From: Phallusia mammillata | Lineage: Eukaryota | Assembly: GCA_965637545.1 (NCBI GenBank) | Contig: OZ281495.1 | Coordinates: forward strand, 12,772,001 to 12,836,000 | DNA: 64,000 bases | Direction of reading: 5' to 3' | Shown here: positions 1 through 63,901 of the stretch, piece by piece | Layout of the letters: each line of letters starts with the position of its first letter | How positions within the stretch are numbered: the stretch's first letter is position 1 | Program-made: the position numbers and the translations under genes | The notes under the pieces: generated by a model | Seen by the model: the letters and a program-made list of their open reading frames with translations, nothing else | The model's database searches: none | Told to the model about the DNA's origin: nothing

Positions 1-3000
1 TGTCCCATCAGGTAATACAAGCTGAGTACAAAAAAGTTTTTTTTCAAAATCTGTACATAACCAAGGTGACAAAAAGAAAAAAATCATGTGTTTCTTACCT
101 CGTTAGTAGCGTTCGTAATGCAAACCTCCTGTGGCTCTACAGAAAAAAAAAAAACCCGTAATGTTTAAAGTGTTCAAAAAGGCTTAACAAATTTTCCTTC
201 AAAGTTGAACAAGGCAGAACTTGATATTGTATTGATACACTGTGTCGTTATTTTTGTGTTTTTACTAAGCGTCATAAACTCTTAATTTAACAAATTTAAC
301 AACCTTTGAATTCAAACCCTAACTAGTTGCGTTCTGCACAAACAGCACGCAGGAATACATAAATGTTACTTGCTAACTTAAGTTTATGACATTTTTCATG
401 CTTTAGGTATACTGCTATGAGCGTTGCCGTTTTGATCCTTGCTGAATCGATCAAGAGTTTATCCTTCAACGTTTGTATGAAAACTTTTCACACTAAGCTT
501 TATGTAAGTGAGACCAAATGTTTGCACGTCTACAAACTACTACGTTCTAAATTGTAACAGATCCCAAATACCGAACACGGATTTTCAGCTAAGAACCTAC
601 CGCAGTTGCATGCCAAGCAGCAGTCCACGTTTCCACACTTAAGGTTGTAACCAAATTCACAAGTTCTGTTGACAGTCGGACAATCTATGTGAACTTGCTC
701 GATCACGTGGTTTCCATTTGAATCAAGTTTGCAAGTAAGAATGTAACACGGTTCGCCCGGCTGCTGCCATGACTCATTGATCTGAAATTACTAAGCGGTT
801 ATCCTATGCAATATACGTATTTATTTTATGTGTACTTATTCAGTGCGGTTGAGTAAAAACTTTTGTTACTTATATCTGTGTTTCACAAAAATATAGAGCC
901 GCGAAAATTTAACAACGTTGTGAGTACGTGCAGTTTTGGATTCGTTTTATAAGTAACAACTAGATTAAATCCATGTGTTTTTGCATAACATACAGGTACA
1001 CTTTTCGCCAAGTTTAAACGTATGATATTTGCCTAAAACTCGGAATCTAATAAAAACGTTCATAATTAAGGGCCAAGCATAAAACGGATTTAAAAATTTT
1101 CATACGTGATGATAGGTTGAAAAGGTTTCGTTTCCCACAATGCACTGCTCCTGTTTGCAAGCTGGACAACATACGTCGATTACTGGTTCTTCGCGGTAAC
1201 CCTATAATGTACAAAGGGTGTAACTTGAGAGCGGGACTGATCCAGTACCAATATACGTTTGAACCACGCCGTTTCCTTCCATATTCAGTATTTTTAACAA
1301 ATGAATAAAAATATATCACCAATTAGAAAAATATACAAAATTATTCTCTAGTTTTGTGCATGAATCGAAAATGTTAGTTTAAATTAAAGAATACAAAAAA
1401 TATTTCACCTTCCAATGTTAAGTATTTTTTAAAGACACTCAGAAACGATTGTAATGTAAGACCTAACCAAACAAATCTCTTGATTCTTCTGTACTAATAG
1501 TCGACTAATGAGGGTCAAAAAAATTAAACTCAACTTACTGTAGGACATGGGGAGCATCTGTTTGAAGTGTCGTTGCATGTTGGTTGGCGGTAACCAGTTG
1601 CTGGATCAAGCACCACTGTGCAAGTACACTCCGTACAAGGCTTGCCTGGAAGCGTCCATACGTCACCTATTGGCTTCACAGTTTGACCCTGAGCTTCAAG
1701 AATCATACAAACAGGTCCAGGCACTGGAATACAAGATAAAATTATGTAAGACGAAATGTCGTATCAGCAATAACTTAAGCTTAAAAAGCAATAGAGTCAG
1801 TTTAGTTTGCATTCGCTTTTTATGTTAGCTTAAAAACAAGGCAGTGGTGGACCGCTTGAAACTTGAAATTTACAAAACACTTACCGCATTTTTCTATAGT
1901 GCAGTTGCACATATCGGTCGTTGTTTCCTTTACTTCGCCCTAAAAACGTAAGTAAAACAATTTTGGACTTACATTTAGATCATTTCAGAAAATTTGTCTC
2001 CGACTACAAAAAACAGCCTAAACAACAAACATCATAAAATATACAAAACTTCAAAATTTCGTATTTATGCTAAATCACAAATTTTAAACATCTCGCGAAT
2101 ACTATTTCGCAGTAAGTCAGCTTTATATGATAAGAATGGGCCACGTTTAACTAGTACCGGAGGATGCAGCACCTAATATCGCAATATTTTCGCAGTATTT
2201 AGTCTATTTTTCGGTGCTCGGTTGATCATTATCAGTAAGTGGCTGGAACGAAGAGTTTTAACATTGGAAGTTCTTTTTGAATTTAACGCAAGTAATGTAA
2301 CTATGATTTACAGTACTAAATGTATTATATCGTTGGTATCAACAGAAATGTGCAATTAACCGAATTTTCAGTCAGCTAATCTAAGGCTACTGTTTCGAAT
2401 AGAGTATGTATTAAAACGGCGTTTTAGATTACCAAAAAGCGTTTGTGTAAATATCAGTTCCTGGTATTTACCCTAAAATAGTAAAATCGACTTTAAATCG
2501 GTATAACGCTTGCATGGCACATTTATTACATCCGTTTATGCTTAATATCAAACACAACACGATTCGAAATGTGACTTACCACTAGGCAGTGCTGCGTAAG
2601 GTTGGCGCAGGTCGGACATACGCATTCAAATTCGTCACAACAAACCGTCGTCACAACCTTTGACACCTGCGGGAGGTTGCAATGTGGAGGGGTGGGTCGG
2701 CACTCAGCGGGTACGCACTCACATGTGTAGTAAGGCTGGCAGCCGGTGAAAGTGTTGTTACGCAGTTCAACTTTGCCAAACGGACAAGTGGTGTTGGGAC
2801 GGATCGCTGGGCAGTTCGTATGATCGCATTCTGACAATTTCAATTGTGTATAGTGTAAAGTTTTTGCATCTTTTCGTCACTAACTTAAATTGACTTTTTG
2901 TATACTTTCTCCCTGCATTTTTTATTTGGGGATATTACACATACTGCAGCCTAAAAAGCGCCCGGCAAATATTTTAATGAATCAAAGTTGGGTACGATTA

Positions 3001-3473
3001 GGCATTTACGATAAACTTTTTGTTTTATTGTGTATTAGAGGTAAAATAAAATCCTTTCCAACCAGATAATTTGAAATTGATATCGTTGCAAAAGCTTGTT
3101 TTAAGCACTCTAATTACAGAAAAGACAAATTAGCAATATTTACATTCAGGCACCATTTTTCAGAAAATTAAAATTGTAGCATAAAAATTTAACTGGTTTT
3201 CGTATCCAACAAATAGTGATCATGTGCAAATAGTTTGCAAATCGTTGCATTTGCAAATGCAAATTCGTTTAAGTACATTGACAACATACCGCATGTATAT
3301 TCTGGACAGCATGCATCGGAGCCATGGACAATCTGCAGTTTCTCGCATGAGCCACATATTGGAGCATCGGGTACATGAGAGCATGATCTATTGACACAGC
3401 TTACGTGAAGAGTGTCCGGCTGACAAGTGCAAACCTGGCACCGATTAGACGTCGGCACCCAACCTTCTGAAAT
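1..3473 (-). CDS. C-terminal VWC-like cysteine-rich modules (8 exons, truncated by the window)
   Basis: [13 protein letters not shown]...CCPEYTC; CCDEFECVC; [13 protein letters not shown]...CCPAC; [13 protein letters not shown]...CCLACNC. No cystine knot or stop codon inside the window. The last 21-nt piece (LVLPDGT) is tentative. Confidence 0.85.
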
Positions 3474-6400
3474 CTAAAAAAGTAGTTTTTGTTTTTTGGT
3501 CAGTGAGTTCCAGCAACAACAACTGACTAAGTAGTATTTCTGTCTAGGTTTTACATAGGGATGTGCAAACAGCGGCCTAATGAATAAAGGTTGTGCGGCC
3601 TTTGGAGATGCCTTAATTATTGTTTTGAGTGTGACCAGCCTAAACTATTTAATGCAGCTCTTTCAAGCTTGTCCAATTCTTTTTTTTAGCAGAATCCAGT
3701 CCTTTTTTCTGCAACCTACTGTGAATTTTACTGAACAATACAAGACTGTGGCACGCAACAAAGTATAGTAAACTTTTGTTACGTAAGGTAAAGTAAAAAA
3801 AAAGCAAGGCACAGCTAAATTGCAAGCAAAGATGCAGATACAGCTAAATTGCATGTGTATTTAACCAATATCAGTGTTCAGGGTTGCACAGCATTCACTG
3901 GAAGCGATAAAACAAACAAAATCCTGTAATATCTATTATCACTTACGTTGCGGTAAACATCCTGCTCCACGTCGTAACATTTATAGCAGATTTCGACGTT
4001 CCTGCACATGCCGTCGATCATCACCTGATCAGTGGGACAATCAAGGAAGCAACCCTCTGCTTCCTCTGCACTCTGAAGCGCTGTACCTTCCATACCGAGA
4101 TGTTCACAGTCTTTTTCGTACGGCCGCTTTCGACAAGGGTCGTACGTGAAACCAGGTGGGCAATTTAGAGCTAAGAAGTAATAACTAGATTAATTAACGA
4201 ATCAAGCTGTTAGTCCCAATTAACAACGAATAATAACCAAACTAACATCGGTTTATCACATTACCACGTTAGATCTAATATTTAAATCAATATTGACGAC
4301 CTAAGAATTTTTGGCACTTTTCTGCTTCGTGCCTTAGCTGATAAGTGTAAAAGAAATATAACACACTATTCTCTGTCTTAACTTTGAGTTTCTTAATTAT
4401 TGTTGGGTTACAAAACCGTAAATATCAAGCAAGCTTGAAAACTATGCATGATACATGGCAGTTAAATTGCGTTTTGTTGTAATGTAACAGGACCAGTATG
4501 CATAGACGACCGACCATATTTCCGTTAGCCGACCGATACCTAGATCTAACCACAATCATTGCCACCCACGTAAAGGGCGGATTTAGCATGCGTAGGGTCA
4601 CTGGGTTACCGTTGGATCTGTACCCCATCCCTATACAAATAAAATGACAAAAACACCCTTGCTTTAGTCCAGTTATTACCCTCCTTAATCCGCCACTGGT
4701 CCCATGAGACAGGTAAAGAAAAAAATTCTAGACTTTCATCTATCAAAGACCAACAAAATCTTACGGCAATTGACGATTTCCCTCCAATTAACACAAGCAC
4801 CAATGTGGCGACAAGCTTCAGCGAACGAAGCGATGGAGTCACAAGCCGAATAGTTCTTTGTACAAGTGTCCATTGTACAAGCCTGGAAATAGCGGTCTAA
4901 AAACAAGATCAGTGACATTGGTTAAAAAGGGGAGATCAAAAAGTCACTGAAATAACAAAACTTTATTCTTTTGTACAAAAGATGTTTTGCTAATCTACAT
5001 GTAAACAACGACAGAATTTGCTACTTATTAAACGCATAATAATTAGGAATAAGCTTACTTTTATTTTTAGCACGTACCAAATTTTCTATGGCCACTTACA
5101 CAATGAAATTTGTCTCATGTAATGTGCAACTACTTACTGAAATCCACAATTGCTCTGCAGTTTTCAAATCCTGGCCATAAAGTGATTATGTTGCATTGTG
5201 GGTCAGGTTCCTTTACACAAGCATTCTTCGCGAGTTGTTTCGTACAAGTGGCAGATGACTGCACAAAGAAACATACAACAACGTAAAAAAGTTTCAGTGG
5301 TTTTGATTCATACTGTTAACTTAAAGCAAATTACGAACCGGTACTGTCCAATTGTATCCAAACTCCATAGGATCCGAGATGACGTCACCCGTTCGCAACA
5401 TTAGGTCGTTTGTACGCAGTTTGTCACAATTTCCTGCAACAAAAACATAGACTAATATATGTAGCATGTGACCTACACCCCCAGACTGTGCTTGAAAAGG
5501 CAAAAAGACGGACTTTTCAAAACACAACAAACATGAAAGATTATGAGGAATTAGAGTTGTTTTAGGAACAGATCGGACCAACAACAACGCCTGGAAAACT
5601 TTAGTTCTCGCTCAAGAATGGTTTGAATTCTTCCATACTCTTTGGAGACACAAAACCTCATGTTAACTGTCGGATACTTATTCTGTTTACGAAATTAAAG
5701 TAGACAGTTTTTAATGCAATAAATTTGTATGTTTGCCCCCAAAATGCCACGTCATCCGCTTAACCGCTTGATGGAGGTATCATGAAAATTCAAGCACTTG
5801 TTCACCTGTTAAACTCTATATAACACTATGTTCTTCAGGGCATAGTTTAAAAATAAGTTCATCTTGTGCACTTATTCCTGGACGTTAAATTTTTACAACT
5901 TTTACTAAATGTTTAAAGCGAAACTCAAAAACGGTAATGATTTTTAGGAAAAGTAATTCACCAAAAAAAATCAAGACCTTTATTCTTTATTCAACAATGG
6001 AAAATGCTCTCAGCCCAATCGCATCAACCTTTCAGAAGCTGGGTAAGTGTAAATTAGCACTTCTGGCAATCGTGTGTACTGGTAATACGTTACCTGGATA
6101 ATGGCTGATGCGAAACAATCGCATGAAAAGTTCGGCAAAATAGGTTGTGCGATTAACCGGATTTATTATGTATTTTTTTGTTGTATCTTTATCTGTATTA
6201 TATATTATTCTAAAAAAAATTGCAAAAAAACTCGCTCCACGCATCGAAATACAGCTTCGCACTAAAACCGACCATCAAGTACAAGTCAGCTGCAGTATCA
6301 AACAAAAAAGCTATATATTACTTACCACACATGCCCTCCGTCCTACTATCCCAGGTGTGTGCAGACAACGCAATGGCGACTGAATGTTCAGCAGGTGTGA

Positions 6401-9400
6401 ATTTCACTTCCAGTTCAATAGTTGCCACAACTAAAGTAAATGTCCGATGTCCGACCACCTTTATACTCATATCGGATGATGCTATGCCTTCCCCATAAGG
6501 AAAGCGCAGTGGAATGCCGTTTCTGGTCGCCTAACAGAATGTAAAGAATATGTAAAAACAATAGGTAATATTTCTAAGGCCAAAAAAATAATTGGAGCAA
6601 TTATGTTTGTTTAAACAATGTATTCATAAGATTTTAAAAAAGGATAGTGTTATAGAGGTTTGATTTATGCTTACAAGTGGAAGAAGGTTTGATCAGTTGC
6701 TGCGGTTAAAAATTTTTCTCAAAAAAACGAATTCATGAGAAAATTACTTTAATTTTTTATCTTAATTTACGCAAACGTAGCAAATTTAGTTTTGTTTTTA
6801 TCTAATTGACCGAAGTGTTAACAATGTTTAAAGGAGCATAAAAATATTCACCCTAATCCTATTTTAAGCACTACGAAAAAACTACGAAAAATAAATTCCT
6901 ACAGACACTGTTAATTAAATCCAGATGCGAGATTCTAATATTTTATCAATAAGTTGTCTTACTATCAGCACGTCATATTGTTAGCAAGAAATATTGTTTT
7001 AATTCAATTATACCGTAAGGTCTTCGTATAGTTCATACACCCGATTTCCGAGCACCACTGTGATTTGCACAACACAAGACTTTGCTTCAGGATAGTCGGG
7101 GTTGCATGGACCTGTGGTTTGGATGACCTCGAAACTTGATTGGTTCCCAGTAAGTTTCGAGTTTCGCGCCAACACGTTTTTGCAACCCGGCATGCTTGGG
7201 TAGGCATAGTAGAGACCGTCGAATGTGTGGTAAGCCGGATCGGCCGCAATGTTACAGTAGCCTGGTTAACATATAGCAAGTTGTTGTGTAAGAACTAAGA
7301 ATAAATGGGGTATGATAAATAAGCTTATAGTTTTGTTATGGTACAGTTAACTGACCCGTAGGGGGAAACATAATTGTATGTCGGGTCGCGCGTTTCAGGT
7401 CGGGTTCAAGCTTAAGTTTGAGTAAAAGCTTTATTCAGGTTGGCTTCAGACTCGGAATCATTTGTTTTATAAATGATAAAAAATGGATTTTGGGGCGAGA
7501 TTTTGACTTGTACGTTCAAGTTTGGGTCCCAACTTTTGCCCGCTTGCAACTGTGGTCGAACAGTAGCGCGATTATTTTTTCAGCCAAATAGTTCTTTTTC
7601 TGTTTTGAATATTGTTGAATGTCACAAAAATATTTTGAAGGAACTCATTTTTGTGTGTAACGCCTAACAGAATTATAGCCTTCAAGGCAACGGCTTGTGT
7701 TTGGTGCTGGTTATAAACTGCTCAACGAACATTGATTTAGTCACAAGATAGCATGAAAACATGAAAAAATAATCAAATCAAAGACACATCAACTTTAATT
7801 TTAAATTTTTTACGTTCAAATTTAAATTTTAAAATTTTAAAATCCAATTCTACATTTTCAAATTATATCGTGTCAGATTTTTGATTTTTCTTCCAAAATA
7901 AAGTCCAAACCTAAAACTTACACTGACACTCCCATTGGCAGTTACAGTTGGAGTCGTAGTAAAGCATGGGAAGCATTCCGTTTTCACAGTTTGGCATCGT
8001 TCCATGATCACACCTCAGCTGTTTGTTGATAAGCACCAACTGTCCGTCGGACGTACAAATGTAATACTTGCACTTGTCGTTGGGGTCAGGGTACACCGTT
8101 TCATGGACAGCCAGAGCCTAGCGATAATTTAAAAAAATGATAATGTACAGCTTAGTGTTTTCAAACTTAAAACAAAAAAGTAATTCGCCGCAAAGGCTTT
8201 CACGACTTTGGGTATTAAATTGCCTTAGACCTGTTTCGGCTGTGGTTTCTAAGTCATGGTGTTTTTAAGCAACTCTCCATACAAAAAGCCACATTTTCTA
8301 TTAAACCAAGTAACCCGAATAAACTGAACGAATTAAAAAAAGAAAATATTATGGGCAATGCAAGGAATCTTTTTTAACTTGATTTACATCAAGTTAATGG
8401 TAGTGCATATATGTTATTAACCTGATAGTTTTCTTTCAAGGCGACAATGGAAAAGTTTTTTTTGTTTTTAAGGAAAATAATCAGGGTTGAAACGATCCCA
8501 TAATCTAAATGCGGTTGCCTTTCACGTCAAGTCTATCGAAAGTAACGATAAAAAACATTGCAACACAAACAACAATGAGACAAAGTTTTGTGAAGATTGT
8601 CAAAAGCATCTAATGGTTATTCAGGGATTTTTTTATCAAATAATGATGTAGTCGACAACGACACTTTTGGCTTTGACTTTTATATTGAAGCTCCGCACTG
8701 GCAGCACGTTTAAGCTTACTTTCAATACTGCACATAATACCTAAAGCACCAAACCATACTACAATACTTTCAATACTGCACATAATACCTTAAGTACCAA
8801 AATTACCAAACAGTACTACAATAGTTTCAATACTGAGATCAAACAATACTAAAACTCACCACACTAGTTTGAGATGTTTCGTTGAAATGTTCACAAAACA
8901 CTTGCGTCGTTCTCGCAGGAGCTGCAAAACAACATTTTTATTTGCTTAAAATAACAGTCAAATACGGTTTCTAAATTTAACGGTTTAAAATTGTTTTACT
9001 TACTTGTGGGGCCTGTGGTGATTTCAGGCGGTGTGTAGGTGGTTTCCCTCGTGACGTTGGGCTCTGGTGTAACAGTGGTCGTTATCTTTGCAGTTGCTGT
9101 GCATTAAAGAAGTATGTTAAAAACATTCAAAAAAGGAAGTTCAACTATTTTATGTTGGCTTGTTTGTTTTTTTCTTTTTCAAAAAAATCAACAACATGTG
9201 AAAAGAGGGTATGGTCCGGTTTTGCTTGCAATTTGTTGGTTGTGTAAAAGTTGTAAAAATACTTGTTTTTTCTAGAAGGAGACGAGCCAAACTATTCTCA
9301 ATGACACATGTTACTGTCAATTTTCGCTAAGACACATGCCGTTAAGCGTTTGTCCATTTCAAAAACTTTGTAACAAAATCTGAATCACGAAACTAACAGT

Positions 9401-57400: not shown

Positions 57401-60400
57401 CCACTGAGAGCAGGCTTGTCGAAGAACGTATTGAGCCGGGTAGATGATGGAGTTGTGTTCACACGGGCACTGGTCTTCCTGGACACACTGACCGTCGTGA
57501 AGGAGAGTTCCAGATGGACACACGCACCCATCTACACAATGCTCCTCGCATCCAGTGTCCGGTGTCACAAGGTTGTGGCAGGTCCGTGGACAAGAAGAAC
57601 CGCACTCGGTGTAGACCATTCCTTCCGGGCAGATGACCTCTGCAATCAAATGTTTTAGAAAAGTTGGTTAGTATGAATGCACGACGTTCCAAAGTTTTAA
57701 TTTCCGTTTCGGCGTGTGTTGTGTATACCGACTCGCGGTTTACTCACTTACAAACAGACAAACACACTTTTTTAAGCCGATGAGTTTTCACTCAAAAAGC
57801 AACAAACAAAGCAAAAAGTTGATTTTTTATCAACAAAGACGGATTCCTCAGAATTGTTGATTTTTTATCAGCAGAGAGCAACTCTTGACACTCGTGCCAT
57901 AGCATACATGCGAGGTTATTATGATGACACGCCAAAGCAGTATGCCATCTAATCTCTTTAAATGTACTAAAAACACGTACAAATTTGTCTGCTTTCTGAT
58001 TACTATTTAGTTCAACTGATGAAAACCATCGCAAATGTGTTAATTGCCAATATAAGTCACCATTTTGATAAAAAAGTAAATTAGCACGCTCGGTGAAAAA
58101 GTTACCGACAATCTGATCTAAATTATGCTTTAGCAAGAAAGAACTCAAAACCTTGCGTAAAATACGATCACATTTTTAAAACTTATTCAAAACAATATAC
58201 ATCATAATAATTGCTGAAATTTCATCACAAAGAATTGGGAGGACAGTTTTTAACTTACCGCAAAATCCAGGCTGTCTCCATTCCGGTCTGAGATCGGTTT
58301 TGCTCATACAAAGACGAGAGTATTGCGCCACTGAATTACACTGACAATCTGGTCTGAACGTTCTCTGAAATTAAATACAATAAATAAAATATCAAGTAAG
58401 AGGCACGCCAATTAATGTAAGTTAAGTTCTGGGTGTGCATGTTATGTCAATCAGTAGCAAAGTAACACGCATTAGAATAGTAATGTTTTACGATGAAGTT
58501 AAAAAGCATGAACATCTGCTTTATAGCCACAAATCAGTTCTTTACACCAACTTTACACTTCCAACATGGTATAACAATGTTACAGCCTACCACTTAATGA
58601 AAAGCCTCAGATTTACTAAAAAGTAAAAGATTATCCTAAAACGATATGTTAAGGGCTAAACATTGTCATTATCAAAACTTCTGCGTTATTCTGCCAGTGT
58701 TGTATGTACGGAGCCAATATTTTAAGACGGGAAACTTGTGTAACTTACCTCACATCTACAAAGATCTGAAACACACCCATCAACCAGTGGGTCAGGATCA
58801 ACTCCAGCCGCAACGCAATCAGCAAAAGCACGGTGGTTCGGTATAAACACCAAACACACAGCATGGATCGTCTGTGCCAAAAAAAGTTATCAATAAAAAA
58901 CTGGGTTTTAACTGGGTTTCACTGTTCAAGTATTTTATTTCAACATTCCGTTGTGTTTATTTTATCAAAAGTAACATTTAAGGACGTACAAACGTTTGAC
59001 GGTCCTTGGTGTTGAGGACAACCAAGGTAATACAAATACAATATATTTGCGGTCAATACCAAGCTATCGGTAAGGAAAATTGAGCTATAACAGTCTTACA
59101 TCGACGATATCTGCATCCAGGCCTTCGCAGTCGTATGGTAGTACTGCAACATCGGTACAGTGACTGTGAATACCAAGTACTCTCCATCCTCGAGCCAACC
59201 ATATTGGGCTACTCGCGGGACTGTCTGTGCAAAAACAAACAATTATTACAAAAAAATTTCAAGCATACTCTTATAATTTCCGAATATATCAAAAAGACGT
59301 GTAAAGCACATAAGTCAAATACAGGTAACATGAGCATGAATCGTAGGTGCAAAACAAAACGGGTTCATGCCCAAAATCGTATGTTTTTTTCAAAAAAAAT
59401 AGTTTTTACACAAAAATGCTTCTACAATCCACAGTTGAAAATCTATGGGTTTTTTAACTTGGCATAATTCCGCACTTATTATACAGTCTAATAGTCTATC
59501 AAACAGATGTTGGTTCATAATGATAATATGTTCCCATTTTTTAGTAAAATACAATCGTGGATAAACCCAGTATTTCTACACAGATTTGATATTCATATCG
59601 GTAAGCCCCGAATCGACGATGCAGACCAACAGCTCACTAAAATCCAGATCACATGACGATTGGAAGCAAATAGGTTTTAGTCGTGGATTCGAATTCCACA
59701 GATTGGTCTAGCTCAGTCCTGGGCATTTTACGGCCCGCGGGCCACATCCGGCCTGTTGGCTGTCCCTGTCCGGCCCGCGTGAGGTTTAAGTACATTAAAA
59801 CACCAATCCAATATAGGTCTATTTATGCTATGCATAAAATAAGGCAATTTTGCTGTTATTTTAAAAAGCAATTTGTTACATATGACTACGTAGTGATGCA
59901 CGTGCGTAGGCGAACAGCTACGTGTGATGCTGGTCAAAATCGTAATAAAACACAAGTTGTTCAACCAATTGTTACGTTGCCTATAATGCACTTTTGTGTC
60001 GAAATAATACAGCGGGGATGGGAAAAGCACATAAACCTGATTTTTACAAACTGGAATTGATCAACCTAATTGAATAAAAACTTTGGGTTTTAACATTTCA
60101 GCGTAATATTGCAAGCTAAATTGCTATTTTTCATGTCAATTCGCCCGCTTATTTTTTATGCAAACTATAAATATTTGCATAACAACGCTCAAATGTAGAA
60201 TTAAGTTTAACCAAGTTATCGTTGGTTTGGCCCTCGGACATAAGTCAGGTTTCTTATGTGGCCCCTTTTAAAAATTAATTGCCCACCCCTGGTCTAGCTT
60301 ATGCCATTCCGCATGGTGAAGCCTGGAAAAGCGGCTTAATACCGTTTGATACTGCCCCAAAGAGGCCTAATGTAACAGAGTTGTAAACGGGTCTGAAATT

Positions 60401-63400
60401 GGAGCCCGAACCCGGCCCGAACGCGAAAGTACAAGCCCGAAACCCTGCTCGAACCCGATTCGTTTTTGAGAAGCACGTTTAGGCCCGAAAGTTTGATTGA
60501 CAGGCCTATACTTGAAGACTCAAAGTCCCAGACAACAAACACAATAGACAATTGGTATCGAACAAGGCGTTTTGGGGCTGTTTGATATTAGGTCAGGTCC
60601 ACCAACTGGCTATTTATCTAGTGATTTTTTTTTTAATCCTGACACAGAATGTACAGTCAGGCCCGAATCAGGCCGTTTTTTGAGAAAAAACAAGCCCGAA
60701 AATCTGGCCTGATTTACAACTCTGCAATGTACTGCTACCTGGTGTATCCTCTTTGCTCAAACGTTTGATCGCGTTTATAATTACAAAACAACTTACTGTC
60801 GGGCAAAACCATATCATTGGAGGAATCTTGGTCGGCATTTCCGCATAATCCACATAGTTTTCCGTTATACGTTGAATCTTCCAACTCGATTTCAGCCAGA
60901 CCGTTGCCGTTCCACATAATTATTATCCCAACTTTCATTACAACTTTCAGATATTGGCCGATGCGAACAATTGAAAAGCGTTCCTGGGCAAACTTTGTGT
61001 GGTCCAAGCTGAATAAAAATGTTTGTATTTTGACAAACAGATGGTTGTTTTTGCACAGCTTTAACTTTTTATTAGGAGCACTTGTGACACACTTTTAATA
61101 CAAAGAGTATTATTTGTAAACTACCGCCAGGCATGCTTTGTACCGATTTTGTGTACTATCTGGATGACGTATAAGAAAATAGCTTCGGAAAATTTTGAAG
61201 AAAGTGGCTTCGGAAAAATCGGATCTTTGCCTAATCCCGATAGATTTTGTGGTCTAATCGGGTCCGGATAGTACAGGGTTTACTATATAACTGGCTTTCA
61301 AAGCATATTTTGCCTGGCATCTTGTGAGATTTTTGGGGTTGGTAATTTACATGAAAAAATGGCAACTAAACTTACACTTTGCCGTTCATCATTGCTACGT
61401 TGTTAGGGAGTAGTGTTAAGCTATCTGATCCTTGAAAGTTAATGATTATCGCCATAAACTCTGCAGTTGTGTTAACAAGAGGAAGCAGTTCTGCCGGAAG
61501 CTGAAACAATAAGCAAAGTATTATGTAGCAATAAATAATTAAAATTAGATACCAACTTGTAGCAGATTTTACAAATTTAAACAGATATGGTTTTAGGTAA
61601 ATGACGGTTTAAACTAAACTCCTTTAAATAATAGTGTAACAGCCATTGCCCTTAAATGCAATTATAAGTCCATGGTATAAAATAACACGCTTTATTTATG
61701 AAATCAGAGTTCAATCGGGCATTTTGGGTCGGGCAAAAATGTTTTTAACAAGCCGGCATAATTCGGGCATGAATTAACATTCTGTGTCTATTATTGTTCA
61801 TTGTATATGTGTTCTTTTTCATATTCTGTACAGCCGTAGTTTTTGTAGGCTTTAATATGGGCATGTAAAACAAACTTTGGGCTTAAGCGTTTTTTTTTTT
61901 TTCAAAACTATTTGGGTTCGGGCCGGGCTTCGGGTTCTAATTTTGGGCTCGCTTACAACTCGGGGTAAAATATTTATTTTTTGTTGCCAAATAGATTAAG
62001 AGTTACCATTTGCTCACCATCTCGTATGCAGTCTGGTTTGCTATCTCTCCCGTTTCGCGATGAATCGGAACATAATCTTCTGGGTTCTTGGACAGTTCAA
62101 TGGAGAAGGTGTGGTCGGTGCAGTCGGAAATCATTGTGTAATGACATATACCAGGAAAATCGTATGAGCTTCCATCAAATGTGCGTATATGTCGAGCACT
62201 CCACATTGTACAAGTGCTTTCAGCGTGCCGGTGAGACGACAATGCTGCAAGGTATCAATTGGATAAGTGTAGGCTATAGGTTAAATCAGGGGTGGGCAAA
62301 CTACGGCCCGCGGGCCGCATGCGGCCCGGCAAAGGAGTTTGTGCGGCCCGCCAAATGTTCACAAACTTTGAAGAGAAAGTTACCGAGCAACGCTGAATAG
62401 AATTATAAGCACAGGCGTAGATTTTTAAAAATACCGGGGATGCGACTTGCCTAAACACAGATACTTTTTACGTGCTTTAGCCTGTTGTTTCTGCCATGCA
62501 AATCGTCACTTGACACAATTTCTTTGTTCGATAAAGTAAAAGCGGTTTACGTTTTGAAATACAGCCCACTTTGCAATGTTGACGCCAAAACTTTGGTCAC
62601 TTTTGAACAAGTTTAGGTTGTTGCAGTACTTTGCAAACGAACATTAAACACGGCTACTAAAAGCGGCTCGCATTGTTTAATGTTAGCGCAAGGAATATTA
62701 ACAAAAAAAACGTGGTGTAGCCTATGTTGAAACAAATGCTTGTTTATTTTTTAAATCAATTACAATTGTAGCTTTTCAACCAATGTGTGTACAATCATAA
62801 AAGTGACAAGAAACGTATTTGCAGATAGCTGAAAATATACTATGTTAATATTTTGGGCTAAATCAGGGGTACACAACGTGCGGCCGTAAGGCGACATGCG
62901 GCCGCGGAGACAAGTTTGTGCGGTCGTGGCCATGTATGTTAAAATACATGTACTGGCGGCCGTGACGTAACTGAAACTATTATGCCTAATATTTTGATTT
63001 TCAAACTGCTAAAAACAGATTTCGTGAAACTGGAAAAAAGATTACCAGCCTAGTGACCTGTGACCATATACGCCAGGCTTTTTACCTGCTTATTATGTGC
63101 AAACAATGCAAAAAACAGGCACCGCAATCGTCACTATACAGTGTATGACGTCATAAACAGTTAGCTCCGTTCAGCTAAACTAATGCACCAAGTTAGAAGT
63201 TATTAATCTGAGCATTTTAGACGGCTTTAAATGGTATATATAGGATATAAACCTAATTCTTTACACAAGTTATTTTAAAACAAAAAAAAAACAAGCAAAC
63301 AATTGGCGGCCGTTGGTGAAATACTATGCGGCCCCATAAGATTAAAAACCTTTGAATGCGGCCCTTGCACTGAAAAGTTTGCCCACCCCTGGGGTAAATC

Positions 63401-63901
63401 AAGGCTTCCTAAATTTTTCAGTTCACGATTTTTAAAACAACATTTTTGCGACTGCAGGTATCAGATAAACAACATTAATTTGTAAATGTCATTGAAACTT
63501 TGTGAAAAATTGACGTACCCAAAAACGTTTAACAGTCAAATAATGTTTTTATGTCACACTTTTAATGTCGACCATATACCACGGAAAAAACTTATGGTTT
63601 AACATGACACCATTGCCTCCACAAGCCCGCAGTTTAAAACTTACACGAAAAACTTCGGGTTTAGTGTAAATGTAGGAATGTTTTGTATCTGATATATTTT
63701 ACAAAGACTTGTAATATATTATTGCAGTTATTAATTTTCGATATGTTTAAAGAATAACCAGAACGAAAACTTCCGTTCTAAATAAAAAAACGGCTTTTTT
63801 CTTACTTAGTTGGCATTGGTCCCCGGCATATCCAGCACTGCAGCTGCACACATTCGGCGAAGTACATTTTCCGCCGTTTTGACACCGCTTCGTGCAAACC
63901 G
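1..63901 (-). CDS. Giant secreted von Willebrand factor/gel-forming mucin-like protein (EGF-D1-D2-D'D3-19xVWA-CysD-VWA-D4-VWC); partial at both ends; 92 exons, ~6,900 aa in window
   Basis: Exons in transcription order (high to low): 63806-63901,62018-62244,61376-61500,60797-61008,59100-59224,58749-58871,58259-58364,57402-57639,57050-57214,56536-56726,56015-56126,55818-55891,55545-55658,54078-54293,53381-53621,52826-52908,52580-52696,52098-52245,50912-51050,50645-50792,49988-50166,49544-49654,49233-49361,48814-48970,48427-48597,47870-47987,44616-47803,44393-44437,44178-44317,43896-44064,43434-43724,42952-42987,42819-42893,40553-40689,40013-40240,39248-39473,38485-38532,37837-37982,37350-37512,36651-36953,36250-36348,35525-35667,35288-35468,34949-35227,33772-33861,33094-33236,32326-32503,31674-31961,31489-31545,28095-28139,27827-27975,27546-27723,27098-27391,25925-26089,25593-25744,24918-25095,23982-24527,23826-23915,23476-23666,22851-23063,19832-22422,19472-19742,18548-19034,18219-18463,17554-17787,16708-16954,16040-16185,15426-15653,14676-14898,13936-14010,13089-13213,12555-12720,11932-12107,11162-11335,10432-10675,9004-9096,8860-8921,7922-8117,7014-7261,6326-6530,5339-5433,5138-5258,4765-4896,3947-4170,3290-3473,2580-2830,1885-1939,1539-1723,1106-1201,601-781,99-136,1-21(partial). 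Every junction is phase-compatible and no internal stop was found. Confidence 0.92.
3947..7261 (-). CDS. D4 assembly (VWD4-C8-TIL), 6 exons
   Basis: [16 protein letters not shown]; GMCGNCD; EFGYNW; C8 [10 protein letters not shown]...[12 protein letters not shown]...CVNWR; [13 protein letters not shown]...EGCFLDCP. Confidence 0.92.
7380..7556. mobile_element. Degraded one-ended copy of the CAGAGTTG-family MITE
   Basis: TCGGGTC/CGGGTTC motifs and terminal GCCCGCTTGCAACTGTG matching 34641-34657. Confidence 0.55.
7922..9096 (-). CDS. Thr linker exons and D4N module
   Basis: ...[14 protein letters not shown]|[21 protein letters not shown]...[12 protein letters not shown]...CNCQWECQC. The 62-nt exon 8860-8921 is needed to restore phase. 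Confidence 0.85.
8717..8835. repeat. Intronic ~50-bp tandem repeat (2.3 copies)
   Basis: TACTTTCAATACTG-like starts at 8717, 8765 and 8822. Confidence 0.8.
9631..10106. repeat. Degenerate 17-bp minisatellite (~28 copies) with palindromic cores
   Basis: Consensus CGAATATTCCGGATAAT, containing the palindromes GAATATTC and TCCGGA. Confidence 0.9.
10108..10209. repeat. hAT-like end (CTGTGGTTCTCAA) followed by a 31-32-bp repeat x2.4
   Basis: GCGTACCACCTGA at 10134, 10166 and 10197; no matching right end or TSD found. Confidence 0.6.
10432..12107 (-). CDS. VWA20 (3 exons)
   Basis: [14 protein letters not shown]...[13 protein letters not shown]...|DVATAL...|VILSIVG...FRFLALG...DSIC. Confidence 0.88.
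12555..14010 (-). CDS. Thr linker plus mucin CysD (Mucin2_WxxW-like) domain, 3 exons
   Basis: [25 protein letters not shown]...DIC...IKCE...[11 protein letters not shown]...[12 protein letters not shown]; resembles the CysD pattern C-WT-W...P...GDxE...C...IxC...C...CxNYxVxxxCC. Confidence 0.75.
14042..14228. mobile_element. hAT-type MITE (187 bp)
   Basis: TIRs CAGTGCTGGATTAA / TTAATCCGGCACTG; perfect TSD GATACACA. Confidence 0.9.
14676..16185 (-). CDS. VWA19 (3 exons)
   Basis: [14 protein letters not shown]...GTH|VAIVTYG...GVTNTGKAL...[17 protein letters not shown]|...YIATVG...NAIC. Confidence 0.9.
16708..18463 (-). CDS. Thr/Glu linker plus VWA18 (3 exons)
   Basis: [16 protein letters not shown]...NETK|VALLLYS...WSVLLVTN...|DIVVVG...EHLC. 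Confidence 0.88.
18548..19742 (-). CDS. End of VWA16, linker and VWA17 (2 exons)
   Basis: FMYNSLC...[14 protein letters not shown]...|RFSLVEYG...EKVVVLML...RLVTVG...NKIC. Confidence 0.9.
19832..22422 (-). CDS. Second giant exon (2,591 nt): end of VWA12, VWA13 (21619-22179), VWA14 (21004-21549), VWA15 (20398-20949), most of VWA16 (from 20325)
   Basis: ORF 19642-22458. [24 protein letters not shown] and DAVFVVDD strands, each Cys-bracketed, separated by Pro/Thr linkers. Confidence 0.92.
22851..23915 (-). CDS. Linker exon plus first two exons of VWA12
   Basis: [14 protein letters not shown]...IGPEAVQ|VAILNEG...KTII|; continues in phase 0 into the second giant exon. Confidence 0.88.
23982..26089 (-). 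CDS. Thr/Gly linker exon plus VWA11 (3 exons) with an internal (VNGG)n insertion
   Basis: [15 protein letters not shown]...|PTVITYDD...|SLVMVID...MFVLIV-[NG repeat]-...QEIC. Confidence 0.87.
24161..24340 (-). repeat. Coding 12-bp repeat encoding (V-N-G-G/E)n
   Basis: CCATTGACCCCG-type units; 14 Asn-Gly dipeptides in frame inside VWA11. Confidence 0.9.
25968..26042 (-). repeat. Coding 9-bp repeat encoding (G-T-T/A)x8
   Basis: AG(T/C)GGTTCC units in the linker exon 25925-26089. Confidence 0.9.
27098..28139 (-). CDS. Linker micro-exon plus VWA10 (3 exons)
   Basis: [16 protein letters not shown]...IGPNDTQ|IGVEFYAD...GFPL...|[11 protein letters not shown]...DAVC. Confidence 0.9.
28860..28957. 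repeat. 49-bp near-perfect tandem duplication
   Basis: CTGAGCACTC(A/C)CGCTGCATTCACCCGCCTTAATCGTAAACAAGTGAATT x2. Confidence 0.9.
29105..29800. repeat. Two diverged ~304-bp tandem units followed by a terminal hairpin; possible Helentron-associated (HINE-like) element
   Basis: TATTTTGGGRTTTAAGGGGT at 29133 and 29437; TTCTTGACCAAA near 29392 and 29695; 9-bp stem GTCCCCTTC-agg-GAAGGGGAC at 29771-29791. The family assignment is inference. Confidence 0.5.
29867..31368. mobile_element. Non-autonomous hAT-type element (1.5 kb)
   Basis: Imperfect TIRs CAGGGACGGATTTA / TAGATCCGCCCATG; perfect TSD GAATCTTC; no transposase-sized ORF inside. Confidence 0.8.
31489..33861 (-). CDS. Linker exon, VWA9 (3 exons) and following linker micro-exon
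   Basis: [16 protein letters not shown]...|VSVIFYGD...GFPL...|[11 protein letters not shown]...DLIC; linker [18 protein letters not shown]. Confidence 0.88.
34145..34657. mobile_element. hAT-type MITE, CAGAGTTG family, with an amplified TCGGGCCGGGT array
   Basis: TIR CAGAGTTGCAAG at both ends; TSD GTTTGTAG / GTTTGTAA. Confidence 0.85.
34157..34300 (+). repeat. 11-bp tandem array (TCGGGCCGGGT)n, ~12 copies
   Basis: Ten consecutive perfect units after two variant units; this array produces the spurious [11 protein letters not shown] ORFs. Confidence 0.95.
34949..36348 (-). CDS. Linker exon plus VWA8 (3 exons)
   Basis: [20 protein letters not shown]...IGPSDTQ|VGIYLYAD...GFPL...|[11 protein letters not shown]...DLVC. 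Confidence 0.9.
36651..38532 (-). CDS. Linker micro-exon plus VWA7 (3 exons)
   Basis: [15 protein letters not shown]...IGPEDTQ|IGVFLYGD...GFPL...|[11 protein letters not shown]...DLVC. Confidence 0.9.
39248..40689 (-). CDS. VWA6 (3 exons), complete MIDAS
   Basis: [16 protein letters not shown]...VGVLQFG...GTTNLYTA...[14 protein letters not shown]...ESIC. The last donor is ambiguous (two in-phase GT sites 6 nt apart). Confidence 0.93.
40778..42724 (-). mobile_element. 5'-truncated non-LTR retrotransposon (RTE-like), intronic, same sense as host, frameshifted and interrupted by a MITE
   Basis: RT motifs [47 protein letters not shown]. Frameshift near 41470. C-terminus [12 protein letters not shown]...SW, stop at 40802-40804. 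No endonuclease domain. Perfect 12-bp TSD CAAGTTCGTTTA at 40766-40777 and 42725-42736. Confidence 0.93.
40960..41258. mobile_element. hAT-type MITE nested in the RTE-like element
   Basis: TIRs CAGTGATTCTCAAACT / AGTTTGAGAACCACTG; 8-bp TSD ATGTAAAC / ATGTGAAC. Removing it restores the RT reading frame ([16 protein letters not shown]). Confidence 0.9.
42819..42987 (-). CDS. Two Thr/Glu-rich linker micro-exons (36 and 75 nt)
   Basis: [12 protein letters not shown] and [24 protein letters not shown]; both phase 1-1 with canonical splice sites. Confidence 0.78.
43434..44437 (-). CDS. Linker micro-exon plus VWA5 (3 exons)
   Basis: [17 protein letters not shown]...MSVIGF...[11 protein letters not shown]...VVVLGV...DSVC; intron phases 1,1,0,1,1. 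Confidence 0.88.
44616..47803 (-). CDS. Giant 3,188-nt exon: end of E3, Thr-rich linker, VWA1 (46960-47529), VWA2 (46246-46860), VWA3 (45631-46209), PTS repeat, VWA4 (44677-45291)
   Basis: ORF 44593-47736 (1047 aa). Four Rossmann-type VWA patterns ([33 protein letters not shown]), each bracketed by Cys. Acceptor at 47804-5, donor at 44614-5. Confidence 0.92.
45364..45534 (-). repeat. Coding 54-bp tandem repeat x3 ([18 protein letters not shown]), mucin-like PTS
   Basis: TGTTACCGC at 45364, 45418, 45472 and 45526; near-identical DNA units. Confidence 0.92.
47870..52696 (-). CDS. D'D3 assembly (TIL'-E'-VWD3-C8-TIL-E), exons 17-26
   Basis: [13 protein letters not shown]...ECQATC; [14 protein letters not shown]; [10 protein letters not shown]; [20 protein letters not shown]; [23 protein letters not shown]...[10 protein letters not shown]. 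Confidence 0.95.
49655..49987 (-). other. GC-AG intron
   Basis: The donor AAG|GCAAGT is the only site giving phase 0 into [11 protein letters not shown]; the nearby GT sites give phase 1. Confidence 0.85.
51169..51939. mobile_element. hAT-type MITE (771 bp)
   Basis: Imperfect TIRs CAGGGTTCCTCAAC / GTTGAAGACCACGG; subterminal GGGGGCGAT motifs at both ends; perfect TSD ATTTAAAC. Confidence 0.85.
52826..57214 (-). CDS. D2 assembly (end of E1, VWD2-C8-TIL-E) and D2-D' linker, exons 9-16
   Basis: [14 protein letters not shown]; [16 protein letters not shown]; FGNSWK; C8 [26 protein letters not shown]; [17 protein letters not shown]; linker [13 protein letters not shown]. Confidence 0.94.
54338..54871. 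mobile_element. hAT-type MITE (534 bp)
   Basis: Perfect 15-bp TIR CAGTGGTTCTTAACC; perfect TSD AACTAGGC. Confidence 0.92.
57402..62244 (-). CDS. D1 assembly (VWD1-C8-TIL-E), exons 2-8
   Basis: [27 protein letters not shown]; [10 protein letters not shown]; C8 (CVSDLCRC...[13 protein letters not shown]); TIL ([18 protein letters not shown]...CVDGCVCP). Confidence 0.93.
59714..60291. mobile_element. hAT-type MITE (578 bp)
   Basis: Ends CAGTCCTGGGCA / TGCCCACCCCTG; subterminal GGCCCGCGGGCC; perfect TSD GTCTAGCT. Confidence 0.88.
60376..60724. mobile_element. hAT-type MITE, CAGAGTTG family
   Basis: TIR CAGAGTTGTAAA / TTTACAACTCTG; GCCCGAA motifs; interior matches 34520-34657 in reverse orientation; TSD TAATGTAA / CAATGTAC (6/8). 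Confidence 0.8.
61705..61963. mobile_element. Degraded CAGAGTTG-family MITE
   Basis: CAGAGTTCAATCGGG at the left; GGGTTCGGGCCGGGCTTCGGG...GCTTACAACTCGG at the right; TSD not convincing. Confidence 0.55.
62287..63391. mobile_element. Composite hAT-type MITE (two left ends, one right end)
   Basis: CAGGGGTGGGCAAACT at 62287, a second CAGGGGT end at 62864, right TIR AGTTTGCCCACCCCTG ending at 63391; flanks GGTTAAAT / GGCTAAAT / GGGTAAAT. Confidence 0.8.
63806..63901 (-). CDS. EGF-like domain exon (phase 1-1), N-terminal to D1
   Basis: 96-nt AG/GT-bounded exon translating [31 protein letters not shown] (six-Cys EGF spacing with the NGGxC motif). Confidence 0.88.
   Translation of the reverse strand, partial: RFARSGVKTAENVLRRMCAAAVLDMPGTNAN

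Follow-up and report, generated by a model that had tools for sequence, protein, structure and literature searches.

Were the A domains that set von Willebrand factor (VWF) apart from the gel-forming mucins inserted into a mucin-type scaffold only within the vertebrates, or before them? This question is raised by a locus of the ascidian Phallusia mammillata, contained in a 64,000-nucleotide stretch of contig OZ281495.1 (positions 12,772,001 to 12,836,000; hereafter, the window). VWF is usually described as a vertebrate invention, arisen when three VWA domains were inserted into a gene of the mucin type (PMC3308698), and the notion of a mucin scaffold with inserted VWA domains has been taken up more than once (PMC3308698, PMC6109156). 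The window is filled by part of a minus-strand gene whose predicted product carries twenty VWA units at this very place, between the third and the fourth of its VWD-containing assemblies. The favoured explanation overall, to which a probability of about 60% can be given, is that the locus is one very large, spliced and transcribed gene encoding a secreted-type, Cys-rich glycoprotein of the VWF/gel-forming mucin superfamily.

Several pieces of information about ascidians preceded this observation. Hynes mentioned in 2012 an unpublished ascidian "proto-VWF" (PMC3308698), while Lang et al., who defined VWF by its VWA domains and MUC2/5 by CysD and regions rich in Pro, Thr and Ser (PTS), counted 17 multi-VWD proteins in Ciona (PMC4948705). 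Genes named "CiVWFL" are endostyle-specific markers in Ciona (PMC8462739), VWF-like genes mark zones 2 and 4 of its endostyle (PMC8462739, PMC13635237), VWF-like transcripts mark endostyle clusters in Botrylloides (PMC12212465), and the orthology among ascidian VWF genes has been called unclear (PMC13635237). To judge from the citing passages of three of these papers (PMC8462739, PMC12212465, PMC13635237), CiVWFL1/2 go back to Sasaki 2003. The original prediction for this locus, made from the letters alone, had mentioned such tunicate endostyle genes, in agreement with the Ciona markers (PMC8462739), and had stated that the architecture was not known to have been characterised. The latter statement holds in part: no paper was found that describes an array of 20 A domains together with a CysD-like module, but ascidian VWF-like genes and the unpublished proto-VWF were already in print.

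A single stop-free exon chain

The DNA of the window is AT-rich, eukaryotic and gap-free. Its long open reading frames (ORFs) with domain matches, as well as the ORF pieces that resemble one another, all lie on the minus strand, and two of them, both very long, contain VWA domains (44596-47814 and 19645-22488). The first of these has a Cys-rich start, followed by Thr/Pro-rich runs alternating with VWA domains. A self-trained exon-chain finder, combining codon log-odds, splice-site matrices and phase-consistent dynamic programming, was applied and its output curated by hand. The result was a stop-free chain of 91 exons, from a first exon at 63806-63901 to a last one at 99-136, with a coding sequence of 20,852 nt specifying 6,950 residues. 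The gene strand gave a score of 1146 with this finder, whereas the complementary strand reached 124 and a shuffled sequence 21. The model runs off both ends of the window, and neither start nor stop falls inside it. The continuous, phase-consistent frame of more than 6,900 residues that had been predicted was therefore recovered, with 91 exons in the present model instead of 92.

The model contains 90 introns, 89 of them GT-AG and one GC-AG, with a median length of 409 nt. The GC-AG intron (49655-49987, donor AAG/GCAAGT), which follows exon 49988-50166 and has the sole non-GT donor, was admitted during hand curation of the VWD region of D3, together with one weak donor. Very short against the median is the 56-nt intron at 35469-35524, inside A8. 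Ortholog alignment or acceptor inspection served to set the borders of two A6 exons (40553-40689 and 40013-40240) and the acceptor of the VWC-like exon 3290-3473, two small linker exons (42952-42987 and 42819-42890) were included in the final model, and some borders, such as the starts of exons 17010 and 19742, are uncertain by a few codons. The model protein has 256 Cys and 82 N-x-S/T sites, lacks RGD and shows no Gly-X-Y collagen region in its 6,950 residues. Rfam gave no match anywhere in the window.

Domain by domain, Pfam and an iterated hidden Markov model (HMM) returned the EGF, D and VWA parts of the order that had been foreseen, EGF-D1-D2-D'D3-(VWA)19-CysD-VWA-D4-VWC, whose CysD and VWC labels are leads from language-model look-alikes. 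We hold this architecture, and its encoding at a single locus, with high confidence.

Twenty VWA units between D3 and D4

Iteration of an HMM on the model, starting from a seed of four similar units, yielded 20 full-length VWA units and no more (E-values of 1e-34 to 1e-49). Nineteen of them precede a Cys-rich module and one follows it, in full accord with the twenty tandem units first counted between D3 and D4. No VWA-like ORF was found in the window outside the exons of the model. Pfam alone recognises about half of the units (A1-A4, A6, A13, A14 weakly, A15 and A17-A19), and the Pfam-negative units, compared as a group with the verified ones by hhalign, gave a probability of 96.7% (E 4e-10).

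The units are only 16-23% identical to one another and none can be assigned to A1, A2 or A3 of VWF. All 20 have Cys as their first residue and a second Cys right after the last helix, and the DxSxS motif is intact only in A6 and A8. Most of the A-domain cassettes begin in the same phase. Exon 27, a giant one, takes up a Cys codon of the end of D3 at its third base (split TG/C; the previous exon is 47870-47987) and continues through A4, so that the end of D3 and A1-A4 are joined in one exon.

D assemblies, linkers and Cys-rich modules

Pfam was run exon by exon on the in-frame exon sequences. It revealed three N-terminal VWD-C8-TIL sets in order, with successive profile positions, and a fourth, VWD-C8 set after the central region. 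In D1, the VWD profile was matched at positions 1-46 and 90-154, C8 in two halves and TIL in full (1.7e-15); in D2 and D3, the start and the end of VWD were matched, together with C8 (5.6e-20 and 7.6e-15, respectively) and TIL (1.1e-13 in D2, a weak 6e-3 in D3). The match in D' corresponds to the second half of the TIL profile. Downstream of A20, D4 matched VWD at profile positions 1-70 (5.7e-9) and C8 (8.6e-8), and its TIL-like part was recognised solely by the Cys pattern, the TIL-4 exon having no Pfam or PDB match.

The A domains are separated by linkers of 4-151 residues, mostly rich in Thr, Pro, Glu and Val. Together with the CysD-like module between A19 and A20 and the loop insertion of A11, they add up to about 935 of the 6,950 residues, with 280 Ser plus Thr. 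With so small a PTS content, the protein does not count as a mucin as the term is normally used. The largest coding repeat of the gene is a 54-nt unit present 4.1 times, which, like a 9-nt repeat, encodes Thr/Gly/Pro linker repeats; the three coding minisatellites are likely to be length-polymorphic. The linker exons 42952-42987 and 42819-42890 are, from their phase symmetry and splice sites, probable cassette exons.

The module between A19 and A20 contains ten Cys. Its last exon retrieved from the ESM Atlas 16 best named clusters that all belong to PF13330 (Mucin2_WxxW), at a low score of 0.68 that should be taken as a lead only, while its middle exon retrieved noise only; its identity as CysD is accordingly a lead and not proven. 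The same kind of lead exists for the C-terminal modules, since the ten best named Atlas clusters of exon 3290-3473 are all VWC, with scores of 0.84-0.74. The Cys-rich module preceding D4 had no family match in the exon-level Pfam and PDB searches.

Transcription, and whether there is one product or two

All eight junctions of the segment 8000-13999 were seen exactly in RNA contigs (four runs, two studies), with CT..AC intron ends on the plus strand. RNA depth in the introns of this segment was zero except at a diverged repeat copy (13427-13707), and about 17% of the words of the segment were present in RNA runs, which is its exon fraction. For the 3.2-kb exon 27, 90-99% of the words occurred in RNA runs that several studies had produced from the same organism. 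Overall, the transcript was detected in many RNA runs from four studies, and single spliced RNA contigs of 8.9 kb and 14.3 kb cover part of the locus. The longer of them (14,349 nt, run X6) is spliced across 8000-13999 and reaches 9,732 nt upstream and 3,395 nt downstream of it, ending about 1.3 kb of mRNA beyond the window. Given this extent, A6-A20, the CysD-like module, D4 and the C-terminus lie on one assembled transcript; on the side from A20 to D4, the junctions were checked in RNA only as far as exon 7922-8117.

The short RNA contigs of two runs that align at 13427-13707 differ from it by five mismatches and indels, and seem to stem from a dispersed repeat, of which a diverged copy is transcribed, and not from transcription of the host intron.

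The 14.3-kb contig has its 5' end no more than 1 nt from the acceptor of exon 40553-40689, at the start of A6, and this raises the alternative that the locus yields two or more products, either two separate proteins, D1-D3 with A1-A5 and A6 to D4, or many isoforms that skip A cassettes. Such a division would fit with the large preceding intron, which carries a retroelement ORF on the same strand and the two phase-symmetric candidate cassette exons, and skipping would preserve the frame because most A cassettes share the same phase. However, no stop closes exon 43434-43724, and the first codons of exon 40553-40689 lie in mid-linker, with neither a Met nor a signal peptide. Both halves are also found in the same RNA runs, and A4, A5 and A6 are collinear on single contigs of other species. 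Moreover, the break of the contig may simply reflect the branch between inclusion and skipping of the two small linker exons upstream, which accounts for it without a second gene. More than one product is thus considered improbable, and the join from exon 27 to A6 in the single-gene model rests on the frame, the splice sites, the presence of both halves in the same runs and the orthologs.

Relatives in other species

When 1.84 billion representative proteins were searched exhaustively by HMMER, with the giant exon as query, only 20 matches were obtained. The three best were ORF fragments with 45, 32 and 29% identity, corresponding to orthologous giant exons, and the best named matches were collagen VI-like proteins of distant animals. 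A word-based homologue search with the whole giant exon found nothing, the PTS words having probably swamped the candidates. A 38.5-kb metagenome contig proved to be collinear with residues 1059-3215, including the D3 exons (60-77% identity), the giant exon and the units up to A8. A second, compact contig (L006) is collinear over D1, D2, D' and D3, over the giant exon and over another giant exon, with at least 14 VWA units before the contig ends, and a third one (L007) from D' to at least the seventh VWA unit. The domain order is therefore kept in three other species over the parts that their contigs cover. Since the units match one to one by position, the array must be old, each unit being individually conserved.

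The introns of the metagenome relative contain transposase-derived ORFs of the FAM200/GTF2IRD2-like and ZBED5 types (L001 7824-8165; L004 12899-13912).

Between VWF and the gel-forming mucins

In vertebrate VWF, A1 binds GPIb, A2 contains the ADAMTS13 site and A3 binds collagen, and a furin site, R-X-K/R-R, precedes D'. The ascidian protein follows vertebrate VWF in the arrangement D1-D2-D'D3-A domains-D4-C domains, with VWC-like modules in the last position. In both, CGLC is found in D1 and D2 and a basic cleavage motif, minimal in the ascidian protein, ahead of D', the A domains are stapled by terminal Cys and mostly devoid of a metal site, and several A domains are encoded by a giant exon opening at the end of D3. 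In contrast to VWF proper, with its three A domains, it places twenty between D3 and D4, has PTS linkers between all of them, an N-terminal EGF, a CysD-like module, a mucin-type D3 TIL and CGLC also in D3, and lacks RGD. With MUC2, MUC5AC and MUC5B it has in common the D1-D2-D'D3 ... D4-VWC frame, as far as the VWC-like modules are concerned a putative one, CGLCGN in D3, Thr/Pro-rich repeats, the TIL motif of D3, a C8-3 closest to MUC5B/5AC and a CysD-like module with ten Cys. However, its centre is a folded VWA array and not the long PTS region of the gel-forming mucins, and its one CysD-like module has no WxxW.

Other systems are similar in a more limited way. Compared by description only, Ci-GFM1, the gut chitin-membrane mucin of Ciona, is also an ascidian protein with the D1, D2, D'D3, D4, VWC and cystine-knot scaffold and small PTS, but it has 2,880 residues, contains chitin-binding and other domains and lacks a VWA array (PMC6109156). 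According to the papers that cite their description, CiVWFL1/2 are ascidian genes named for their likeness to VWF and mark protein-secreting endostyle zones; it is plausible that they are relatives or orthologues of the present gene. Collagen VI alpha-3, other multi-VWA matrix proteins and mussel PTMP1 have long VWA arrays and provide the best sequence matches of the A units, although proteins of this type have no VWD/C8/TIL and collagen VI has a triple helix.

PDB searches made with single exons gave matches specific for the position in the scaffold. The TIL-1/E-1 exon matched the VWF propeptide (294-367) at 95.6 bits, against 58.6 for MUC5B and 48.4 for MUC2, VWD1 was equidistant between VWF and the mucins, and the C8-2 exon aligned to VWF 579-648. 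The C8-3 exon matched D3 of VWF, MUC5AC, MUC5B and MUC2, with isolated mucin D3 chains at 59 bits and VWF D'D3 at 46 bits, and the TIL-3 exon matched only MUC5B, MUC5AC and MUC2, and no VWF chain, with the common pattern C-x-YN...C-x-WHY...EGC-x-PKCP. On account of these position-specific matches the protein can be placed in the VWF/gel-forming mucin superfamily with mixed affinities, and the original description as a VWF/mucin chimera is borne out by a VWF-like TIL/E in D1 and a D3 TIL that matches mucins only.

Two histories can be proposed for such a mixture. In the first, the gene is the tunicate orthologue of VWF, that is, a proto-VWF of the sort once mentioned for ascidians (PMC3308698), so that the A insertion would predate the vertebrates and their three-A form would be a reduction. 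This is suggested by the position of the array, the terminal Cys pair of each A domain, as in VWF A1 and A3, the start of the giant multi-A exon where D3 ends, and the strong preference of the D1 TIL/E exon for VWF. It also agrees with an AlphaFold model of A13 (pLDDT, the predicted local distance difference test, 66; pTM, the predicted template modelling score, 0.71), which has the VWA fold and whose 23 best Foldseek matches are all VWF A1 (template modelling scores of 0.71-0.74). Against it stand the D3 TIL and C8-3 exons, with their mucin-only match and their higher mucin scores, and the behaviour of a contiguous seven-unit profile, which retrieved from the PDB collagen VI chains, mussel PTMP1 (second-best), integrin I domains and VWF A1/A3 with similar per-domain scores. 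Orthology with VWF is, on balance, a possible but doubtful history.

In the second, the gene is a tunicate-specific paralogue of the gel-forming mucins that gained and expanded its VWA cassettes independently, for instance from a collagen VI-like source, and converged with VWF. The mucin-like D3, the PTS linkers with small tandem repeats, the CysD-like module, the collagen VI chains as best sequence matches of the A units and the many multi-VWD genes of tunicates (PMC4948705) can all be accommodated in this way. However, it is less parsimonious to assume that domains stapled by the same terminal disulfide were inserted independently exactly between D3 and D4, and the TIL/E of D1 is clearly VWF-like. 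Convergence deserves serious consideration, at somewhat less than even odds.

A number of observations weigh against the favoured assignment to a secreted protein of the VWF/mucin type, or against parts of it. No annotated protein among the 1.84 billion representatives resembles the A1-A4 exon, and in sequence the A units do not resemble VWF A1-A3 more than they do collagen VI or integrin I domains. Neither the CysD-like nor the VWC-like exons had a Pfam or PDB match in the exon-level searches, and W-T-E-P occupies the place of WxxW in the former; of the CysD and VWC originally claimed, the module positions and the Cys patterns are present, with language-model look-alikes only for family identity. 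RLFR, at the D2/D' junction, is only the minimal R-x-x-R furin motif. Neither a signal peptide nor a cystine knot at the C-terminus was seen, and both would lie outside the window. Finally, the link from exon 27 (A1-A4) to exon 40553-40689 (A6) was not seen in the RNA contigs.

Proposed assembly and role

By analogy with VWF and MUC2/MUC5B, the protein would probably form a disulfide-linked polymer. Subunits would dimerise tail to tail by a cystine knot located outside the window. Head-to-head joining via D3 would take place in the late, acidic compartments of the secretory pathway, with the aid of the CGLC-bearing D1-D2 propeptide, which a furin-type cleavage would then remove. The product would be a long disulfide-linked string, destined for secretion. 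Per subunit, it would include a rod of 20 beads, the A domains, every one with a terminal disulfide staple as in VWF A1 and A3 and most of them without a metal site, with O-glycosylated linkers acting as spacers, and the CysD-like module may provide lateral contacts. The polymerising secreted protein of the original prediction is a reasonable inference from CGLC in D1, D2 and D3 and from R-L-F-R/S, to be read with the signal peptide and the cystine knot lying outside the sequence at hand.

Such a string could serve as an extracellular fibre or net, and the best candidate would be the protein filament of the pharyngeal feeding net, produced by the glandular zones of the endostyle. This proposal is based on the expression of ascidian VWF-like genes in the endostyle; it is a guess by analogy, to be taken as tentative. 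Alternatively, the protein might act in haemolymph clotting or wound plugging, as a tunic or larval adhesive, or in an egg-coat matrix. The architecture would suit any shear-resistant or adhesive extracellular polymer, PTMP1, the second-best PDB match, is a VWA protein that binds collagen in the adhesive threads of mussels, and the transcript occurs in many RNA runs of four studies. In addition, coagulation-type domains are reported to be induced in Botryllus rejection reactions (PMC2527998). On the other hand, the published expression data for ascidian VWF-like genes come only from the endostyle (PMC8462739, PMC12212465), and a role of this kind would have to be regarded as possible, with the odds against it.

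Retroelement, repeats and features of the locus

The intron 40690-42818 contains, on the same strand as the host gene, an ORF of 440 residues (41452-42774) with a Pfam RVT_1 match (2e-33), that is, a reverse transcriptase. No long terminal repeats or inverted repeats were found around it in that intron, and it is probably a truncated non-LTR retroelement. A spliced-leader 16-mer is not present in this intron either. The remaining repeats are listed, together with the exons and domains, in Table 1.

Table 1. Exons, domains, motifs and repeats of the locus, in window coordinates (TRF, Tandem Repeats Finder).
Feature	Position	Strand	Basis
Whole gene part	99-63901	-	Stop-free chain, strand and shuffle controls, RNA junctions, collinear orthologs
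Exons 1-8	63806-63901; 62018-62244; 61376-61500; 60797-61008; 59100-59224; 58749-58871; 58259-58364; 57402-57639	-	
Exons 9-18	57050-57214; 56536-56726; 56015-56126; 55818-55891; 55545-55658; 54078-54293; 53381-53621; 52826-52908; 52580-52696; 52098-52245	-	
Exons 19-27	50912-51050; 50645-50792; 49988-50166; 49544-49654; 49233-49361; 48814-48970; 48427-48597; 47870-47987; 44616-47803	-	
Exons 28-36	44393-44437; 44178-44317; 43896-44064; 43434-43724; 42952-42987; 42819-42890; 40553-40689; 40013-40240; 39248-39473	-	
Exons 37-49	38485-38532; 37837-37982; 37350-37512; 36651-36953; 36250-36348; 35525-35667; 35288-35468; 34949-35227; 33772-33849; 33094-33236; 32326-32503; 31674-31961; 31489-31545	-	
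Exons 50-62	28095-28139; 27827-27975; 27546-27723; 27098-27391; 25925-26089; 25593-25777; 24918-25095; 23982-24527; 23826-23915; 23476-23666; 22851-23063; 19832-22422; 19472-19742	-	
Exons 63-75	18548-19034; 18219-18463; 17550-17787; 16708-17010; 16040-16185; 15426-15653; 14676-14898; 13936-14067; 13089-13213; 12555-12720; 11932-12107; 11162-11335; 10432-10675	-	
Exons 76-91	9004-9096; 8860-8921; 7922-8117; 7014-7261; 6326-6530; 5339-5433; 5138-5258; 4765-4896; 3947-4170; 3290-3473; 2580-2830; 1885-1939; 1539-1723; 1106-1201; 601-781; 99-136	-	
EGF-like exon, first in window	63806-63901	-	Pfam EGF_2 E 5.9e-6, EGF 6.8e-5
D1 (VWD1-C8-1-TIL-1/E-1), exons 2-8	57402-62244	-	Pfam, PDB, L006 collinear
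CGLC of D1	60843-60854	-	Spliced sequence
D2 (VWD2-C8-2-TIL-2), exons 9-15	53381-57214	-	Pfam, PDB match VWF 579-648
CGLC of D2	55864-55875	-	Spliced sequence
R-L-F-R/S, minimal furin-type site at D2/D' junction, intron-spanning	52692-52835	-	Read from spliced sequence
D' (TIL'-E'), exons 17-18	52098-52696	-	Pfam TIL 1.4e-3 on second exon, Cys pattern, L006 and L007 collinear
D3 (VWD3-C8-3-TIL-3-E-3), exons 19-26 and first 16 codons of exon 27	47755-51050	-	Pfam, PDB, ortholog
CGLC of D3	49634-49645	-	Spliced sequence
Giant exon 27, 3,188 nt: end of D3, PTS linker, A1-A4 and linkers	44616-47803	-	One open frame, Pfam VWA in 4 stretches
A1	47002-47529	-	HMM 1.8e-37, Pfam
A2	46243-46860	-	HMM 9.5e-42, Pfam
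A3	45652-46209	-	HMM 8.7e-36, Pfam
18-residue Thr/Pro/Gly tandem repeat, 54 nt x 4.1, A3-A4 linker	45317-45539	-	TRF and translation
A4	44674-45291	-	HMM 5e-37, Pfam
A5, 3 exons	43435-44315	-	HMM 9.7e-41, hhalign group 96.7%, ortholog exons
Two candidate cassette linker exons (42952-42987 and 42819-42890), phase-symmetric, T/E/V-rich	42819-42987	-	Strong splice sites, linker-like composition
A6, 3 exons, intact DxSxS	39255-40678	-	HMM 5.3e-43, Pfam VWA 7.9e-12
A7, 3 exons	36652-37980	-	HMM 7.2e-49, hhalign
A8, 3 exons, 56-nt intron, intact DxSxS	34950-35665	-	HMM 3.2e-49, hhalign
A9, 3 exons	31675-33234	-	HMM 1.2e-46, hhalign
A10, 3 exons	27099-27973	-	HMM 1.2e-46, hhalign
9-nt x 8.9 coding minisatellite, linker repeat	25967-26046		TRF
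A11, 3 exons, (VNGG)n loop insertion	23982-25736	-	HMM 2.9e-34, TRF, hhalign
12-nt x 10.7 coding minisatellite, (VNGG)n loop in A11	24161-24288		TRF
A12, ends inside giant exon 19832-22422	22210-23613	-	HMM 1.4e-39, seven-unit profile 4.3e-11
A13	21616-22179	-	Pfam VWA 1.1e-9, AlphaFold 2 model and Foldseek
A14	21001-21549	-	HMM 1.6e-43, weak Pfam 9.4e-3
A15	20395-20949	-	Pfam VWA 1.3e-14
A16	19679-20328	-	HMM 6e-39, hhalign
A17	18573-19588	-	HMM 7.5e-48, Pfam VWA 6.2e-8
A18, 3 exons	16727-18347	-	HMM 4.5e-44, Pfam VWA 2.5e-5 and 0.023 on two exons
A19, 3 exons	14692-16168	-	HMM 2.5e-48, Pfam VWA 1.1e-8 and 8.4e-3
CysD-like ten-Cys module (exons 13936-14067, 13089-13213, 12555-12720)	12555-14067	-	Exons and junctions in RNA
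A20, 3 exons	10445-12093	-	HMM 1.5e-38, hhalign, all junctions in RNA
PTS linker exons (9004-9096, 8860-8921) and Cys-rich pre-D4 module (7922-8117)	7922-9096	-	RNA junctions
D4 (VWD4-C8-4-TIL-like), exons 7014-7261 to 3947-4170	3977-7261	-	Pfam VWD and C8
C-terminal Cys-rich VWC-like modules, 7 exons	99-3976	-	Atlas lead, Cys pattern
17-nt x 27.6 satellite, intronic	9632-10100		
304-nt x 1.9 duplication, intronic	29133-29706		
11-nt microsatellite, intronic	34170-34300		
Dispersed element, two copies in opposite orientation, intronic	34395-34753 and 60339-60587		

Implications for the origin of VWF

The gene described here provides a member of the vertebrate sister group with A domains at the same place as in VWF, transcribed and with the order of its array kept in at least four species. 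With D assemblies that are partly VWF-like and partly mucin-like, it offers a concrete sequence for asking whether the A insertion predates the vertebrates, and it opens a second question, that of the function of such a polymer before platelets. The protein of the ascidian filter nets is still poorly defined, and the gene is a candidate for it; with 20 stapled A domains per subunit, its product would represent an unusual natural string-of-beads polymer for studies of mechanics and adhesion. That the gene is at once the tunicate counterpart of VWF and a structural filament of the endostyle feeding net is unlikely. If true, however, the insertion of A domains between D3 and D4 of a mucin scaffold would be pre-vertebrate and would have taken place in a feeding-mucus polymer with a long A array, and the haemostatic three-A protein of vertebrates would be the outcome of a later reduction and co-option.

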